In this document: positions 2,493-63,097 of the stretch, in pieces
Position numbering within the stretch: position 1 is the first letter of the stretch
How the letters are laid out: every line of letters begins with the position of its first letter
Assembly (NCBI GenBank): GCA_977016875.1
Contig: CDRNST010000599.1
Location: forward strand, 1 to 63,871
Length of the DNA stretch: 63,871 nucleotides
DNA from: Pavona decussata
Lineage: Eukaryota
Reading direction: 5' to 3'
Made by a program: the position numbers and the translations under genes
Notes under the pieces: model-generated
The model's database searches: none
Told to the model about the DNA's origin: nothing
What the model saw: the letters and a program-made list of their open reading frames with translations, nothing else

Positions 2493-2884
2493 TGCACCAC
2501 ATAAATCGTGTGATACTGAGTGAGTATAATGGCAATGATGTTCATGCTCTGTCATGATACTCACTCTATGTGATAAAGAAATCATACTGTGTGTGTCTCA
2601 TGTGTCTCATAGTATTGCCTTTACGTCATTTGTTGATAAAGGAGCATGATACCAATGACACAGCAATATAATTATTAACAAATTAGATGATTTCAGACAA
2701 GATGACAGAGTCAGAAAGTAAGGCACGGGAAGATATTCTGTAGTGTGTAATGACTAGCTCTGTGCCTTCAGTCTGTGGCTGTCGTGGACCGACAAGCCAC
2801 TTTTACACATGCACTGTATTGATACCGTGTATCTTCCTGGTTGCTCATATATTGTCATCCATTTATGTTTCATGTTAACAAAAA

Positions 2885-5500
2885 AAGTATCTGTGAAAGT
2901 ATCTGTGAAAGTGGCTTACCGGTCCACGACAACCACAGACTGAAGGAACAGAGTTACCTCCAAGCTACTTATTTTGGTGGAAGTATCTCTGTAAGTGGCT
3001 TGTCGGTCCATAGAGTTACAGACTGTAGCCACAGAGCAATCACCATGTAATTTATTGTGGTGGAAGTGCTAGTGAAATTGGTTTGTTAGTCCACGACAGT
3101 CACAGACTGAAGGTACAGAGCTATCTCCATGATACTTATCCTGGTGGAAGTATCTGTGAATGTAGCTTGTCGGTTCACGACAGCCACAGACTGAAGGAAC
3201 AGAGTTACCTCCAAGCTACTTATTTTGGTGGAAGTATCTGTGTAAGTGGCTTGTCGGTATATACAGTTACAGACTGCAGCCACAGAGCTATCTCCATGCT
3301 ACTTATCCTGGTGGAAGTATCTGTGAATGTGGCTTCACGATCCACAACAGCCACAGACTGCAGCTACAGAGTCATCACCATGCAACTTATTGTGGTGGAA
3401 GTATCTGTAAAAGTGGCTTGTCAATCCATGACAGCCACAGATTGAAGGCACAGAGCTACCTCCATGCTACTTATCTCAGTGGAAGTATCTGTAAAAGTGG
3501 CTTGTCAGTCCATGACAACCACAGACTGAAGGTACAGAGCTATCTTCATGCTACTTATCTCGGTGAAAGTATGTGTAAAAGTGGCTTGTTGGTCCATGAC
3601 AGCCACAGACTGAAGGCACAGAGCTATCTTCATGCAACTTACTGTGGTGGAAGTACTTGTGAAAGTGGCTTGTCAGTCCACAACAGTCACAGACTAAAGG
3701 CACAGAGCTATTTCCATGCTACTTATCTCAGTGGAAGTATCTGTAAAAGTGGCTTGTCTGTCCATGACAACCACAGACTGAAGGTACAGAGCTATCTCCA
3801 TGCTACTTATCCAGGTGGAAGTATCTGTGAATGTGGTTTGTCGGTTCACTCAGTCACAGACTGCAGCCATAGAGCCATCACCATGCAACTTACTGTGGTG
3901 GAAGTACTTGTGAAAGTGGCTTGTCAGTCCACAACAGTCACAGACTAAAGGCACAGAGCTATTTCCATGCTACTTATCTCAGTGGAAGTATCTGTAAAAG
4001 TGGCTTGTCTGTCCATGACAACCACAGACTGAAGGTACAGAGCTATCTCCATGCTACTTATCCTGGTGGAAGTATCTGTGAATGTGGTTTGTCGGTTCAC
4101 TCAGTCACAGACTGCAGCCATAGAGCCATCACCATGCAACTTACTGTGGTGGAAGTACTTGTGAAAGTGGCTTGTCAGTCCACAACAGTCACAGACTAAA
4201 GGCACAGAGCTATTTCCATGCTACTTATCTCAGTGGAAGTATCTGTAAAAGTGGCTTGTCTGTCCATGACAACCACAGACTGAAGGTACAGAGCTATCTC
4301 CATGCTACTTATCCTGGTGGAAGTATCTGTGAATGTGGTTTGTCGGTTCACTCAGTCACAGACTGCAGCCATAGAGCCATCACCATGCAACTTACTGTGG
4401 TGGAAGTACTTGTGAAAGTGGCTTGTCAGTCCACAACAGTCACAGACTAAAGGCACAGAGCTATCTCCATGCTACTTATTCTGGTGGAAGTATCTGTGAA
4501 AGTGGCTTGCCAGTCCACAACAACCACAGACTGAAGGAACAGAGTTACCTCCAAGCTACTTATTCTGGTGGAAATGTCTGTAAAAGTGGCTTGTCAGTCC
4601 ACGACAGCCACAGACTGAAGGAACAGGGCTATCTCCATGCTACTTATCCAGGTGGCAGTATCTGTGAATGTGGCTTGTCGGCCATGACAGCCACAGAGTG
4701 AAGGCACAGAGCTAGCTTCATGCTTCTTATCTCAGTGGAAGTATCTGTAAAAGTGGCTTGTCAGTCCACAACAGCCACAGAGCCATCACCATGCAACTTA
4801 TTGTGGTGGAAGTATTTGTAAAAGTGGCTTGTCAATCCACGACAGCCACAGACTGAAGGCACAGAGCTACCTCCATGCTACTTATCTCAGTGGAAGTATC
4901 TGTAAAAGTGGCTTGTCAGTCCATGACAACCACAGACTGAAGGTACAGAGCTATCTCCATGCTACTTATCCTGGTGGAAGTATCTGTAAATGTGGCTTGT
5001 CGGTCTACGATAGCCACAGACTGAAGGCACAGAGCTATCTATCTCCATGCTACTTATTCTGGTGGAAGTATCTGTGAAAGTTATATTTGTGTGTGTTTGT
5101 CTCACAGTGGAAGTATCTGTAAAAGTGGCTTGTCAGTTCACGACAGCCACAGCATAGAGTTACCTCCATGCTACTTATTTTGGTGGAAGTATCTGTAAAA
5201 GTGGCTTGTCGGTCCATACAGTTACAGACTGCAACCACAGAGCCATCACCATGTAACTTATTGTGGTGGAAGTGCTTGTGAAAGTGGCTTGTCAGTCCAC
5301 GACAGTCACAGACTGAAGGTACAGAGCTATCTCCATGCTACTTATCCTGGTGGAAGTATCTGAATGTAGCTTGTCTGTGCTACTTATTTTATTATCCTAC
5401 TGGAGGTATCAGAGAATGTTACTCATACTTTGATGAGAGTTTCGGCATGCATCCAAAGGTCTCCATGCCACTAATCCTGGTGGAAGTATCTGTGAAAGTT
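2885..5500 (+). repeat. 84-bp satellite array, forward (AGCCACAGACTGAAGG strand), with a 251-bp higher-order repeat
   Basis: Unit ~agccacagactgaaggcacagagctatctccatgctacttatcctggtggaagtatctgtgaatgtggcttgtcggtccacgac. ORF starts at 3921, 4172 and 4423 show the 251-bp (84+84+83) period. Preceded by a short reverse unit at 2756-2810. Confidence 0.95.
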
Positions 5501-8486: not shown

Positions 8487-8738
8487 TCATTACACACTAC
8501 AGAATATCTTCCCGTGCCTTACTTTCTGACTCTGTCATCTTGTCTGAAATCATCTAATTTGTTAATAATTATATTGCTGTGTCATTGGTATCATGCTCCT
8601 TTATCAACAAATGACGTAAAGGCAATACTATGAGACACACACAGTATGATTTCTTTATCACATAGAGTGAGTATCATGACAGAGCATGAACATCATTGCC
8701 ATTATACTCACTCAGTATCACACGATTTATGTGGTGCA

Positions 8739-17172: not shown

Positions 17173-17380
17173 GTATCATACAGCATGAGTATGATTTTTT
17201 TTGTTATCCGTATGACATAGAGTGAGCATCATGACAGAGCATGAACATCATGGCAATAATTCCAATCGATATACCTAAATCACACGTAAACCACATACAC
17301 CATCCCTTGAACTCCATGATACGAGGAGCATGATACTCATTATTTCAGATATCAATGGATTTTTGCTATGATCCTCATGC

Positions 17381-17628
17381 TTACTGATTGCACCACATAA
17401 ATCGTGGGACCAACTGATGAGTCCTCCCACTAAAAATAATGGACGAAAAGCTCACTGTATCATACAGTGAACTGCTTGCACCACATAAATCGTGGGACCA
17501 GCTGATGAGTCCTCCCACTCTAAAAGTAATGGACGAAAAGTTCACTGTATCATACAGTGAACTTACTGGTTGCACTACATAAATTGTGGGACCAGCTGAT
17601 GAGTCCTCCCACTCTAAAAATAATGGAC
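17381..17628 (+). ncRNA. Tandem hammerhead ribozyme array; middle unit 17492-17570 intact
   Basis: accag-CUGAUGA-gucc-loop-ggac-GAAA-aguucacugua/uca/uacagugaacu-UA-cuggu has the full core, stems I, II and III, and predicted cleavage after A17565. gtggga (17492-17497) is complementary to loop II tcccac (17513-17518). Unit 1 has a damaged cleavage site and unit 3 stops after ggac. Confidence 0.88.
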
Positions 17629-18610
17629 ATTGCTATGATACTCATGCTGTATGATACAGATACACACAGCATTATTGTTTGCTATGATCATAGCAATGAA
17701 CCAACCAATTGATGGGTTCAGATCCCAGTTTGCCACTAGCTTTGATTGCTATGATACTGCATGGGATTACAGGACCATGATACAACTCTATGGGCACAAT
17801 AATATCGTAAAAAATCATTATACGGGGCATTGATATCTGTATCACACAGCATGGGTATTCCATATCATGGCAATAAGTCGTTTATATCATGCTCTTGTAT
17901 CATAGCATTAATTTTTATGAGGCCACATCATAAAAGCATGCCAATTTGCATTTATTGTATTAATCCGTTAATTGGTTAATTGGTTAACACTCTACAGCAT
18001 GAGTAATTATAGCAGTAATGAGTGTCAGCTTTCCTGTATCATAATGCATGAGTATCATAGCCGTAATCCCAATAAAAATCTGTATCACACAGCATGAACA
18101 TCATGGCATGAATCATGGCATCATGCTAGGTATCACAGGAACATGCTACTAAATAATGCACACGAAAACAGTCATTGCACACTACAGAAAGTACACACAC
18201 CTTATGACCTAACCCTAACCCCTAACCACAGATATTGTGGCTCAATTGTCCTAATACTTACTCTATATGTGATACAGATAATACAGATACTCTGCTACTG
18301 ATGCGCTTACATATGCATGGGGCGAACAGTATGGGGACACACCCACAATGACACGCATTGGTATGTGCAAAAGTCACGTGGAATATTAATGAGTTCGCAC
18401 CTCAATTTTAGATCGAGAACTTTTTTGTCCTATCTAGGTTTCTCGCCGTCCGCTCTTTTCCTTGTCTTCAACTAAAGAGTAAGTAGAGATGAAATGCATC
18501 TACGCATTTAATTAAGAGTTAACCACTATAACAAGCGATGTGGCCACAACTTAAATTGGCTCATTATGATTGGAACTAGGTCCGTGCTATTCTATACATA
18601 CTATAGGAAT

Positions 18611-20735: not shown

Positions 20736-20994
20736 TGCACCACATAAATCGTGTGATACTGAGTGAGTATAATGGCAATGATGTTCATGCTCTGTCATGA
20801 TACTCACTCTATGTGATAAAGAAATCATACTGTGTGTGTCTCATGTGTCTCATAGTATTGCCTTTACGTCATTTGTTGATAAAGGAGCATGATACCAATG
20901 ACACAGCAATATAATTATTAACAAATTAGATGATTTCAGACAAGATGACAGAGTCAGAAAGTAAGGCACGGGAAGATATTCTGTAGTGTGTAAT

Positions 20995-23095
20995 GACTAG
21001 CTCTGTGCCTTCAGTCTGTGGCTGTCGTGGACCGACAAGCCACATTCACAGATACTTCCACCAGGACAAGTAGCATGAAGATAGCTCTGTGCCTTCAGTC
21101 TGTGGCTGTCATGGACCAACAAGCCACTTTTACACATACTTTCACCGAGATAAGTAGCATGGAGATAGCTCTGTGCCTTCAGTCTGTGGCTATCGTAGAC
21201 CGACAAGCCACATTTACAGATACTTCCACCAGGATAAGTAGCATGAAGATAGCTCTGTACCTTCAGTCTGTGGTTGTCATGGACTGACAAGCCACTTTTA
21301 CAGATACTTCCACTGAGATAAGTAGCATGGAGGTAGCTCTGTGCCTTCAATCTGTGGCTGTCATGGATTGACAAGCCACTTTTACAGATACTTCCACCAC
21401 AATAAGTTGCATGGTGATGACTCTGTAGCTGCAGTCTGTGGCTGTTGTGGATCGTGAAGCCACATTCACAGATACTTCCACCAGGATAAGTAGCATGGAG
21501 ATAGCTCTGTGGCTGCAGTCTGTAACTGTATATACCGACAAGCCACTTACACAGATACTTCCACCAAAATAAGTAGCTTGGAGGTAACTCTGTTCCTTCA
21601 GTCTGTGGCTGTCGTGAACCGACAAGCTACATTCACAGATACTTCCACCAGGATAAGTATCATGGAGATAGCTCTGTACCTTCAGTCTGTGACTGTCGTG
21701 GACTAACAAACCAATTTCACTAGCACTTCCACCACAATAAATTACATGGTGATTGCTCTGTGGCTACAGTCTGTAACTCTATGGACCGACAAGCCACTTA
21801 CAGAGATACTTCCACCAAAATAAGTAGCTTGGAGGTAACTCTGTTCCTTCAGTCTGTGGTTGTCGTGGACCGGTAAGCCACTTTCACAGATACTTTCACA
21901 GATACTTTTTTTGTTAACATGAAACATAAATGGATGACAATATATGAGCAACCAGGAAGATACACGGTATCAATACAGTGTGTCTTTTCGTCCATTATTT
22001 TTAGAGTGGGAGGACTCATCAGCTGGTCCCACTTACGCACGCAACAGATGCTGAGACACACGCGCTGAGACACACACACAAATATAACTTTCACAGATAC
22101 TTCCACCAGAATTAGTAGCTCTGTGCTGCAGTCTGTGGACAGACAAGCCACTTTCACAGATACTTCCACTAGAATAAGTAGCATGGAGGTAAATGTGCCG
22201 TTAGTGTGTAGCTGTCGTGGATCGGCAAGCCACTTTCACAGATACTTCCACCAGAATAAGTAGCATGGAGATACCTCTGTACCTTCAGTCTGTGGTTGTC
22301 ATGGACTGACAAGCCACTTTTACGGACACTTCCACTAGAATAAGTAGCATGAAGGTAGCTCTGTGCCTTCAGTCTGTGGCTGTCATGGACCAACAAGCCA
22401 CTTTTACACATACTTTCACTGAGATAAGTAGCATGGAGATAGCTCTGTGCCTTCAGTCTGTGGCTGTCGTGAACCGACAAGCTACATTCATAGATACTTC
22501 CACCAGGATAAGTAGCATGGAGATAGCTCTGTGCCTTCAGTCTGTGGCTGTCGTGAACCGACAAGCTACATTCACAGATACTTCCACCAGGATAAGTAGC
22601 ATGGAGATAGCTCTGTGCCTTCAGTCTGTGGCTGTCATGGACCAACAAGCCCCTTTTACTAGCACTTCCACCACAATAATTTACACTGTCGTGGACTGAC
22701 AAGCCACTTTCACAAGCACTTCCACCACAATAAGTTGCATGATGTTAGCTCTGTGCCTTCAGTCTGTGACTGTCGTGGACTGACAAGCCACTTTCACAAG
22801 CACTTCCACCACAATAAGTTGCATGGTGATGGCTTTGTGGCTGCAGTCTGTAACTGTATGGACCGACAAGCCACTTACACAGACACTTCCACCAAAATAA
22901 GTAGCTTGGAGGTAACTCTGTTCCTTCAGTCTGTGGTTGTTGTGGACTGGCAAGCCACTTTCACGGATACTTCCACCAGAATAAGTAGCATGGAGATAGC
23001 TCTGTGCCTTCAGTCTGTGGCTGTCGTGGACAGACAAGCCACTTTTACAGATACTTCCACTGAGATAAATGGAAATAGCTCTGTGCCTTTAGTCT
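20995..23095 (-). repeat. 84-bp satellite array, reverse, interrupted by a ~180-bp spacer containing an HHR
   Basis: Reverse units with a unique spacer at ~21906-22085. Confidence 0.93.
21951..22032 (-). ncRNA. Hammerhead ribozyme variant B inside the satellite
   Basis: Reverse complement of 62062-62143. Confidence 0.8.
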
Positions 23096-32114: not shown

Positions 32115-32362
32115 TTACTGATTGCACCACATAAATCGTGGGACCAACTGATGAGTCCTCCCACTAAAAATAATGGACGAAAAGCTCACTGTATCATACA
32201 GTGAACTGCTTGCACCACATAAATCGTGGGACCAGCTGATGAGTCCTCCCACTCTAAAAGTAATGGACGAAAAGTTCACTGTATCATACAGTGAACTTAC
32301 TGGTTGCACTACATAAATTGTGGGACCAGCTGATGAGTCCTCCCACTCTAAAAATAATGGAC
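32115..32362 (+). ncRNA. Tandem hammerhead array, second copy; intact unit 32226-32304
   Basis: Same as 17381-17628 at offset +14734; predicted cleavage after A32299. Confidence 0.88.
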
Positions 32363-33344
32363 ATTGCTATGATACTCATGCTGTATGATACAGATACACA
32401 CAGCATTATTGTTTGCTATGATCATAGCAATGAACCAACCAATTGATGGGTTCAGATCCCAGTTTGCCACTAGCTTTGATTGCTATGATACTGCATGGGA
32501 TTACAGGACCATGATACAACTCTATGGGCACAATAATATCGTAAAAAATCATTATACGGGGCATTGATATCTGTATCACACAGCATGGGTATTCCATATC
32601 ATGGCAATAAGTCGTTTATATCATGCTCTTGTATCATAGCATTAATTTTTATGAGGCCACATCATAAAAGCATGCCAATTTGCATTTATTGTATTAATCG
32701 GTTAATTGGTTAATTGGTTAACACTCTACAGCATGAGTAATTATAGCAGTAATGAGTGTCAGCTTTCCTGTATCATAATGCATGAGTATCATAGCCGTAA
32801 TCCCAATAAAAATCTGTATCACACAGCATGAACATCATGGCATGAATCATGGCATCATGCTAGGTATCACAGGAACATGCTACTAAATAATGCACACGAA
32901 AACAGTCATTGCACACTACAGAAAGTACACACACCTTATGACCTAACCCTAACCCCTAACCACAGATATTGTGGCTCAATTGTCCTAATACTTACTCTAT
33001 ATGTGATACAGATAATACAGATACTCTGCTACTGATGCGCTTACATATGCATGGGGCGAACAGTATGGGGACACACCCACAATGACACGCATTGGTATGT
33101 GCAAAAGTCACGTGGAATATTAATGAGTTCGCACCTCAATTTTAGATCGAGAACTTTTTTGTCCTATCTAGGTTTCTCGCCGTCCGCTCTTTTCCTTGTC
33201 TTCAACTAAAGAGTAAGTAGAGATGAAATGCATCTACGCATTTAATTAAGAGTTAACCACTATAACAAGCGATGTGGCCACAACTTAAATTGGCTCATTA
33301 TGATTGGAACTAGGTCCGTGCTATTCTATACATACTATAGGAAT

Positions 33345-61448: not shown

Positions 61449-63097
61449 GAGTGAACCGACAAACCACATTCACAGATACTTCCACCAGGATAAGTAGCAT
61501 GGAGATAGCTCTGTACCTTCAGTCTGTGGTTGTCATGGACAGACAAGCCACTTTTACAGATACTTCCATGCTACTTATTCTGGTGGAAGTGTCCGTAAAA
61601 GTGGCTTGTCGGTCCACGATAGCCACAGACTGAAGGAACAGAGCTATCTCCATGCTACTTATCTCAGTGAAAGTATGTGTAAAAGTGTAAAAGTGGCTTG
61701 TTGGTCCATGACAGCCACAGACTGAAGGCACAGAGCTACCTTCATGCTACTTATTCTAGTGGAAGTGTCCGTAAAAGTGGCTTGTCAGTCCATGACAACC
61801 ACAGACTGAAGGTACAGAGCTATCTCCATGCTACTTATTCTGGTGGAAGTATCTGTGAAAGTGGCTTGCCGATCCACGACAGCTACACACTAAAGGCACA
61901 TTTACCTCCATGCTACTTATTCTAGTGGAAGTATCTGTGAAAGTGGCTTGTCTGTCCACAGACTGCAGCACAGAGCTACTAATTCTGGTGGAAGTATCTG
62001 TGAAAGTTATATTTGTGTGTGTGTCTCAGCGCGTGTGTCTCAGCATCTGTTGCGTGCGTAAGTGGGACCAGCTGATGAGTCCTCCCACTCTAAAAATAAT
62101 GGACGAAAAGACACACTGTATTGATACCGTGTATCTTCCTGGTTGCTCATATATTGTCATCCATTTATGTTTCATGTTAACAAAAAAAGTATCTGTGAAA
62201 GTATCTGTGAAAGTGGCTTACCGGTCCACGACAACCACAGACTGAAGGAACAGAGTTACCTCCAAGCTACTTATTTTGGTGGAAGTATCTCTGTAAGTGG
62301 CTTGTCGGTCCATAGAGTTACAGACTGTAGCCACAGAGCCATCACCATGTAATTTATTGTGGTGGAAGTGCTAGTGAAATTGGTTTGTTAGTCCACGACA
62401 GTCACAGACTGAAGGTACAGAGCTATCTCCATGATACTTATCCTGGTGGAAGTATCTGTGAATGTAGCTTGTCGGTTCACGACAGCCACAGACTGAAGGA
62501 ACAGAGTTACCTCCAAGCTACTTATTTTGGTGGAAGTATCTGTGTAAGTGGCTTGTCGGTATATACAGTTACAGACTGCAGCCACAGAGCTATCTCCATG
62601 CTACTTATCCTGGTGGAAGTATCTGTGAATGTGGCTTCACGATCCACAACAGCCACAGACTGCAGCTACAGAGTCATCACCATGCAACTTATTGTGGTGG
62701 AAGTATCTGTAAAAGTGGCTTGTCAATCCATGACAGCCACAGATTGAAGGCACAGAGCTACCTCCATGCTACTTATCTCAGTGGAAGTATCTGTAAAAGT
62801 GGCTTGTCTGTCCATGACAACCACAGACTGAAGGTACAGAGCTATCTTCATGCTACTTATCCTGGTGGAAGTATCTGTAAATGTGGCTTGTCGGTCTACG
62901 ATAGCCACAGACTGAAGGCACAGAGCTATCTCCATGCTACTTATCTCGGTGAAAGTATGTGTAAAAGTGGCTTGTTGGTCCATGACAGCCACAGACTGAA
63001 GGCACAGAGCTATCTTCATGCTACTTGTCCTGGTGGAAGTATCTGTGAATGTGGCTTGTCGGTCCACGACAGCCACAGACTGAAGGCACAGAGCTAG
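61449..63097. repeat. 84-bp satellite, short reverse segment then forward array with an HHR spacer
   Basis: Switch at ~61563-61567; ~61686-63431 is the reverse complement of ~20663-22408. Confidence 0.93.
62062..62143 (+). ncRNA. Hammerhead ribozyme variant B (type I topology)
   Basis: gtgggaccag-CUGAUGA-gucc-ucccac..-ggac-GAAA-agacacacugua/uuga/uaccguguaucu (10 of 12 pairs)-UC-cuggu; predicted cleavage after C62138. Confidence 0.8.

Follow-up and report, generated by a model that had tools for sequence, protein, structure and literature searches.

A retrozyme-like hammerhead unit was probably inserted once into the 84-bp satellite that makes up most of the window, and was passively duplicated thereafter. 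The window corresponds to an entire contig of 63.9 kb (C599) from an assembly of 602 Mb. The satellite runs in both orientations along the window, and a break in the array at 62008-62194 holds one complete type I hammerhead ribozyme motif (HHR-B). Judged by its sequence, this motif is a real and intact type I hammerhead of a conserved family, and the satellite carries it as a passenger rather than as a component of its own.

A type I hammerhead of a conserved family

The initial annotation had placed a complete hammerhead inside a spacer of about 180 bp in the 84-bp array, and this description was borne out by the presence of the core and of three helices (6, 4 and 13 positions) arranged around it, with stem I forming the open end (Table 1). 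The type I core presents the CUGAUGA and GAA elements together with the A15.1-U16.1 (A62108-U62137) and G10.1-C11.1 (G62079-C62104) pairs, and the cleavage triplet, correctly given as UUC in the annotation, follows the NUH rule (H not G). Stem III encompasses 11 Watson-Crick pairs and two mismatches, C62112.A62133 and U62117.C62128. The pattern CTGATGAGTCC-N(10-30)-GGACGAAA has 6 matches in the window, versus 0.00 expected, which excludes a chance origin of the motif.

Table 1. Coordinates of the hammerhead motif, of the spacer that carries it and of related features in the window.
Feature	Position	Strand	Remarks
Left flanking direct repeat	61988-62007	+	candidate target-site duplication; 20 bp, GTGGAAGTATCTGTGAAAGT
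Inserted spacer	62008-62194	+	181 bp to A-run end at 62188; 187 bp with extra GTATCT
TG-rich leader	62008-62061	+	part of spacer
Leader motif	62016-62042	+	TG run, then GTCTCA twice; homologous to 20831-20852
Hammerhead variant B (HHR-B)	62062-62146	+	predicted cleavage between C62138 and C62139
5' tail GUGGG	62062-62066	+	read from sequence
Stem I	62066-62071 with 62139-62144	+	6 bp, including one G-U
Core CUGAUGA	62072-62078	+	read from sequence
Stem II GUCC/GGAC	62079-62082 with 62101-62104	+	4 positions
Loop II	62083-62100	+	18 nt
GAA	62105-62107	+	read from sequence
Stem III	62108-62120 with 62125-62137	+	13 positions; loop UUGA
Cleavage triplet UUC	62136-62138	+	H17 = C62138
Trailer	62147-62181	+	part of spacer
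AAC + A7	62182-62188	+	spacer end
Right flanking repeat	62195-62214	+	19/20 identical to left copy; then GGCTT
Second HHR-B copy	21948-22033	-	100% identical including flanks; within inverted segmental duplication
HHR-B 3' remnant	2812-2884	+	3' part of stem III, cleavage site, trailer, A-run
Spacer start only	5082-5104	+	first 23 nt, same left junction; remainder deleted back into satellite
Variant A array	17403-17682	+	88-94-nt units

An Rfam scan of the whole window at the gathering score returned zero matches. On HHR-B, the Hammerhead_1 model (RF00163) yields a misaligned match of 12.5 bits (gathering score 34, E 8.8), an outcome explained by the fact that the model permits only a short stem III; the sub-threshold score is hence a limit of the model and no argument against the motif. 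The family at large is missed by this model because stem III is long and loop II is large. A custom covariance model built from three local hammerhead variants assigned HHR-B a score of 97 bits.

Public metagenome contigs were scanned with a 17-mer of the core and then with a covariance model, identifying more than 60 related hammerheads, nearly all of them in two assemblies; in viral contigs the 17-mer had no match. The relatives share with HHR-B the GUGGG tail, an invariant CUGAUGA, stem II and the 18-nt loop II, and they are 92-94% identical to the window over ~50 nt. This alignment is limited to the first ~50 nt of the hammerhead, with no homology to the metagenome relatives in the spacer leader, the trailer or the satellite, and such identity between unrelated repeat units of different organisms supplies an alignment for a better model. 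The stem III of the relatives is short and varies in length from 5 to 13 positions with its pairing kept, and an A-U pair of stem I in the window is G-C in the relatives, among which pairs are maintained in both stems I and III.

The comparative analysis of 31 distinct sequences revealed C at H17 in 27, A in three, U in one and G in none. In the same set 98% of the cells are paired and three pairs are changed on both sides, values as high being obtained in 0-1 of 500 shuffles, and none of the slid registers came near the true one. In addition, RNAalifold recovered the three-way junction unaided from 66 family members. The predicted fold is thus supported at the family level. Loop II starts with UCCCAC in 30 of the 31 distinct sequences and the GUGGG tail is likewise nearly invariant. 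A GUGGG/CCCAC contact between tail and loop II would probably aid the fold; no compensatory change at this contact was observed in the family, in which tail variants are few and one-sided.

Many of the relatives recur at a spacing of ~445 nt. On seven contigs (L063, L067, L071, L076, L095, L116 and L120, from WLWD01/WLWI01) the hammerheads are spaced 443-503 nt apart, and CTGGCTAAAACATAC and a (CA)n tract come after each one, often together with a 23-bp minisatellite that reaches up to 30 copies. These repeats suggest a family akin to retrozymes that contains micro- and minisatellites within its units. The possibility that the ends of the relatives are of poly(A) type was considered and rejected, given that the (CA)n tract and the 23-bp minisatellite lie inside the repeat unit.

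Insertion into the satellite and duplication of the copies

The spacer is bounded by duplicated satellite sequence. Without 62008-62214, the satellite reads as an in-phase 84-bp monomer, with monomer starts at 61988, 62195 and 62279, and the last 14 bp of the left flank are repeated perfectly immediately past the A-run. The flanking repeat may be taken as 14 bp perfect or as 20 bp with one mismatch and, lying inside a tandem array, could have other origins. The left junction is also retained at 5062-5081. The right junction is more complex, requiring an additional 12-bp duplication or a 6-nt filler, and TRF reports a perfect 12-bp repeat of 2.4 copies at 62186-62214. Insertion combined with an arbitrary-phase deletion in a tandem array mimics a duplication of 10-25 bp in about one of five cases. 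We read the flanking repeat as a putative target-site duplication, for which the tandem-array context weakens this kind of evidence. The flanking repeat of 14-20 bp, the restored monomer phase, the A7 end and the junctions common to all copies together underlie the interpretation of the ribozyme as a passenger insertion.

The full copy on the opposite strand lies in a 1.87-kb inverted duplication, in which 61565-63435 matches 22521-20659 and the two arms present 5 differences in ~1730 bp outside the divergent left end. The differences between the arms cluster in 61579-61684, and the orientation of the satellite flips at 61560-61575, a fold-back junction that coincides with the left end of the duplication. 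The annotation had described the opposite-strand copy as facing the hammerheads of a cassette; the copy is there, and the facing arrangement is a by-product of the inverted duplication, being present twice (62 kb/63.4 kb and 22 kb/20.7 kb) as a consequence of the duplication of the whole block. The truncated remnant and the spacer start lacking a hammerhead, both reported in the annotation, were also recovered. The start of the remnant is equivalent to 62114, with the block 62114-63096 matching 2812-3794 at 96.1%. At 2806-2815 an inversion breakpoint falls inside the 5' strand of the HHR-B stem III palindrome, where inverted satellite is fused to CACTGTA.

The junctions shared across the four copies indicate that all of them descend from one event, and the alignments indicate that the copies spread through very recent segmental and inverted duplication. 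The absence of differences between the two full HHR-B copies was considered as a sign of constraint and rejected: with only 5 differing sites in the surrounding ~1.7 kb, the identity of the two hammerheads is uninformative in this respect.

The annotation had likened the locus to the hammerhead satellites of newts, schistosomes and cave crickets. Under such an explanation, transcripts of the satellite would be processed by the ribozyme, and selection within the array would maintain its stem III. The motif does lie inside the 84-bp array and is repeated along with it, and letters of both satellite and hammerhead occur in metatranscriptome-library contigs, but none of the several hundred 84-bp monomers of the window matched the custom covariance model, whose matches were restricted to copies of the spacer and to the cassette arrays with their halves. 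Furthermore, there are only two full copies, identical by virtue of very recent duplication, stem III, with its 13 positions, contrasts with the weak one of such satellites (PMC7229834), and the insertion junctions contradict the explanation, which we consider extremely improbable. The likeness hence fails, and the case illustrates that a ribozyme within a satellite need not be a satellite ribozyme, however tempting that reading.

Searches of the assembly with BLAST, exact patterns and the covariance model, the latter scoring 150 of ~13,400 candidates, detected the HHR-B family on this contig alone, and no copy of the leader or the trailer was found elsewhere in the 602 Mb. Many ordinary Rfam-type hammerheads are present on other contigs of the same genome. 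As far as it was scored, the 84-bp satellite is also confined to this contig, and the repeats of the contig from 52-56 kb match small, high-numbered contigs and none of the large ones. The contig may belong to the main-genome chromosomes or to a co-sampled organism.

Sequencing runs of six organisms contain words from the spacer, as do marine metagenomes and four RNA libraries of sponge metagenomes. Four runs were compared with 61940-62270, all the data being assembled contigs that report presence only. A contig from one organism (B) is identical over 62048-62253, including the right junction. In another (C), the 91 letters of 62062-62152 are unchanged and both flanks are different, and in a metatranscriptome contig 62065-62175 is unchanged, with divergence starting just before the A-run. 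The foreign flanks of the organism C and RNA-library contigs are absent from the window, implying that a B-type unit exists outside the spacer and that the A-run is specific to the present insertion. Spacer letters are abundant in the sponge-metagenome RNA libraries and the marine metagenomes. The 84-bp satellite likewise reaches a very high depth in the RNA library, where DNA carry-over is possible.

A second group of hammerheads in the window, variant A, forms an array that is duplicated at 32137-32416. Unit 2 (17491-17573) is the sole fully intact unit of the array and reaches the hammerhead fold by minimum free energy (z -5.4). Units 1 and 3 and the split halves are visibly decayed. The array (17380-17629) lies between 17-nt direct repeats with one mismatch (17363-17379 and 17630-17646), consisting of TTGCTATGAT followed by C or A and CTCATG. 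This suggests that the variant A array is an insertion too; TTGCTATGAT is also found elsewhere in the vicinity, and the repeat may hence be something other than a target duplication. A metagenome contig (L111:4088-4241) carries a 77-nt tandem duplication of 2 copies, 97% identical, that spans the upstream linker and most of the hammerhead and resembles the mini-array of 88-94-nt variant A units.

On either side of HHR-B, the sequence is similar to the linker between variant A units, with CUG(G)UUGC past each cleavage site, which indicates that HHR-B spans approximately one 92-nt cleavage-to-cleavage unit (62047-62138) and parts of its neighbours. The leader motif aligns to 20831-20852 with 22/22 matches and one 5-nt gap, scoring 35 against 14.8 +/- 2.3 for shuffled sequences (0/500 reach this value), and the matched segment sits ~95 nt 3' of a variant-A 3' half. 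All variant-A 3' halves have a TG run with a doubled GTCTCA ~95 nt to their 3' side, the other copies lying near 2602 and 35565 and, on the minus strand, near 8630 and 63250 (estimated positions). In addition, if the ~108-nt unit 62043-62150 is removed, leader and trailer align unbroken across 20852/20853. The homology of the trailer to the cassette flank was retained as suggestive only (p about 0.07). As a lead, the spacer may consist of a paralogue of the cassette-flank segment within which a hammerhead mini-unit is nested.

The leader match beside the variant-A halves fits local DNA rearrangement as well as it fits retroposition. According to the former, the spacer would be filler or captured DNA from the cassette flank (20831-20890 and copies) that harbours the nested hammerhead mini-unit and reached the satellite in the course of double-strand-break repair or unequal exchange, and both the flanking repeat and the A-run would be incidental. 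Beyond the leader match and the unbroken alignment on removal of the unit, this agrees with the richness of the contig in inversions and microhomology junctions, such as the breakpoint at 2812, and with the restriction of the family to this contig. Local rearrangement, however, does not predict that the monomer is restored in phase or that a perfect 14-bp repeat directly follows the A-run, the similarity of the trailer is weak, and the occurrence of the B-type unit in other contexts in other organisms indicates that it moves or copies independently. We deem this explanation, the strongest of the rivals, unlikely. Evidence against a retrozyme-like insertion comes from the A-run of only 7 bases, from the lack of any further copy in the searched assembly and from HHR-B not adopting the hammerhead as its minimum-free-energy fold.

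In the retrozyme-like insertion that we favor, HHR-B would represent a single intact unit of a small mobile repeat. The family is characterised by a type I hammerhead in which the 5' GUGGG tail and the 18-nt loop II are conserved and the length of stem III varies. We infer that a fragment, presumably RNA-derived, entered one 84-bp monomer once and duplicated 14-20 bp of its target. The inserted fragment would run from the TG-rich leader through approximately one 92-nt unit and the start of the next unit to the A-run. Subsequent expansion, inversion and partial loss of the satellite array would then have left the two identical full copies and the two truncated ones.

Stem III variation and predicted folding

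The stem III strings quoted for variants A and B in the initial annotation are correct. The compensatory T:A to A:T swaps described there correspond to one swapped pair (U-A in A, A-U in B) and to one base added per strand, giving an extra A-U pair in B. This part of the description stands; it does not extend to several swaps, and B in addition has a different loop and two mismatches, C.A and U.C. The former is the commonest state among the window copies and the latter is new. The predicted stability of the isolated hairpin is halved, from -14.1 kcal/mol in A to -7.0 kcal/mol in B.

The A-B changes are clustered, with 7 in the ~25 stem III columns versus 3 in the 61 columns elsewhere (Fisher p 0.005). 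This clustering fits the free drift of a helix whose sequence is irrelevant and, equally, one templated event in a palindrome. Selection on structure, which the annotation had proposed on the basis of the A-B comparison and for which it had called for a covariation analysis of the genomic copies, was not established. Covariation among the window copies is not significant (30/500 shuffles as high, six distinct rows in the genome), a mismatch has been gained and half the stability lost; given that the searches of the assembly detected no copies beyond this contig, the within-genome analysis lacks power. The polarity of the changes appears to be the reverse of the one implied by the annotation. 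Both the A-U pair and the UUC site of B are the most frequent states among the outside relatives, and it is variant A that probably carries the derived ones (the swap and a UUA site).

Nested minimum-free-energy folding of B did not reach the hammerhead fold, whose share of the predicted ensemble is 0.7% for B alone, 0.03% for the whole spacer and 16-27% for variant A unit 2, figures that ignore a possible pseudoknot. The leader segment GUGUGUCU is a perfect complement of the 5' strand of the HHR-B stem III, and the two are paired in the minimum-energy fold of the whole spacer. The weaker stem III and this competing pairing would make B a poorer folder than variant A unit 2, and the two constitute a natural stem III pair for testing the effect of stability and leader competition on cleavage. 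If the region is transcribed, the RNA would be expected to adopt the three-way junction and to self-cleave 3' of C62138.

The same observations could be taken to suggest that HHR-B is a decaying, inactive relic that looks intact through youth alone. The two mismatches in stem III, with half the stability of variant A, the small share of the hammerhead fold in the predicted ensemble and the visible decay of the neighbouring variant A units 1 and 3 and split halves are in line with this possibility, and the copies in the window are too young to reveal constraint. Nevertheless, all core positions are intact, including G10.1-C11.1 and A15.1-U16.1, the 11 Watson-Crick pairs of stem III are far above the need of natural type I hammerheads, for which one- and two-pair stems are documented (PMC7229834), the 91 letters of 62062-62152 are retained without change in contigs from several organisms and in RNA libraries, and the C.A mismatch, as the prevalent state in the window, is no new lesion. 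A relic is hence a decidedly improbable reading of HHR-B.

A more far-reaching proposal, which we regard as speculative and rather improbable, is that of a mobile hammerhead unit, unusually small at ~90 nt and made up almost entirely of ribozyme, whose stem III is long and whose tail-loop II contact is conserved; the unit would move among marine animals and nest in other repeats. Under this proposal, the stem III of B would have been rebuilt from GUGUGUCU by a templated event, and pairing with the leader would switch cleavage off in the full transcript.

Relationship to known hammerhead systems

Coral type I hammerheads reside in non-LTR retrozymes, and the target-site duplications of these elements, where they occur, exceed the 4 bp of those in plant retrozymes (PMC7229834). 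The published units of metazoan non-LTR retrozymes are 150-450 nt long, contain one type I hammerhead apiece and are arranged head-to-tail (Cervera and de la Pena 2020, PMC7229834), and a Penelope-like origin has been proposed for them (bioRxiv 10.64898/2026.07.22.740005). Hammerheads of Penelope-like elements reside in the terminal repeat (pseudo-LTR) of elements encoding RT and GIY-YIG; the ORFs scanned in the window encode ankyrin-repeat proteins or have no family match. As in retrozymes, the repeat that carries the type I hammerhead HHR-B is short, non-coding and AT-leaning. The insertion may also be bounded by a direct duplication of more than 4 bp (the candidate of 14-20 bp), intact copies are mixed with core-mutated ones, and many other hammerhead repeats exist in the same genome. 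The relatives at ~445-nt spacing in the contigs of another organism likewise have the arrangement known from animal retrozymes (PMC7229834).

The locus differs from retrozymes in consisting of one unit plus fragments of its neighbours, and not of a tandem array, and in having an A-run at its end. The local units, of ~92 nt in B and 88-94 nt in the variant A array, are shorter than the published range. Moreover, unlike the hammerheads of retrozymes, those analysed here are not detected by Rfam Hammerhead_1, and their stem III of 12-13 positions departs from the one or two pairs of published animal motifs.

In newt satellite 2, Schistosoma Sm-alpha and Dolichopoda pDo500, every monomer encodes a ribozyme with a weak stem III (PMC2837043, PMC6155905). 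The present locus shares with them the physical location of a type I hammerhead within tandem repetitive DNA. It differs in that the 84-bp monomer has no ribozyme, which arrived by a single insertion, and in that the stem III of HHR-B (13 positions, 11 Watson-Crick pairs, -7.0 kcal/mol) is far from the one or two pairs of those satellites.

The possible contact of 5-6 bp between the GUGGG located 5' of stem I and the CCCAC of loop II resembles that of pseudoknot-stabilised hammerheads (Perreault et al. 2011, PMC3088659). In contrast to these, the contact in the present family shows no compensatory change, and its pairing is in competition with stems I and II when the RNA is folded as a nested structure. 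Overall, the unusual traits of the HHR-B family are its very short units, its long stem III and its conserved loop II, and the locus is otherwise an ordinary passenger insertion of a known kind of element.
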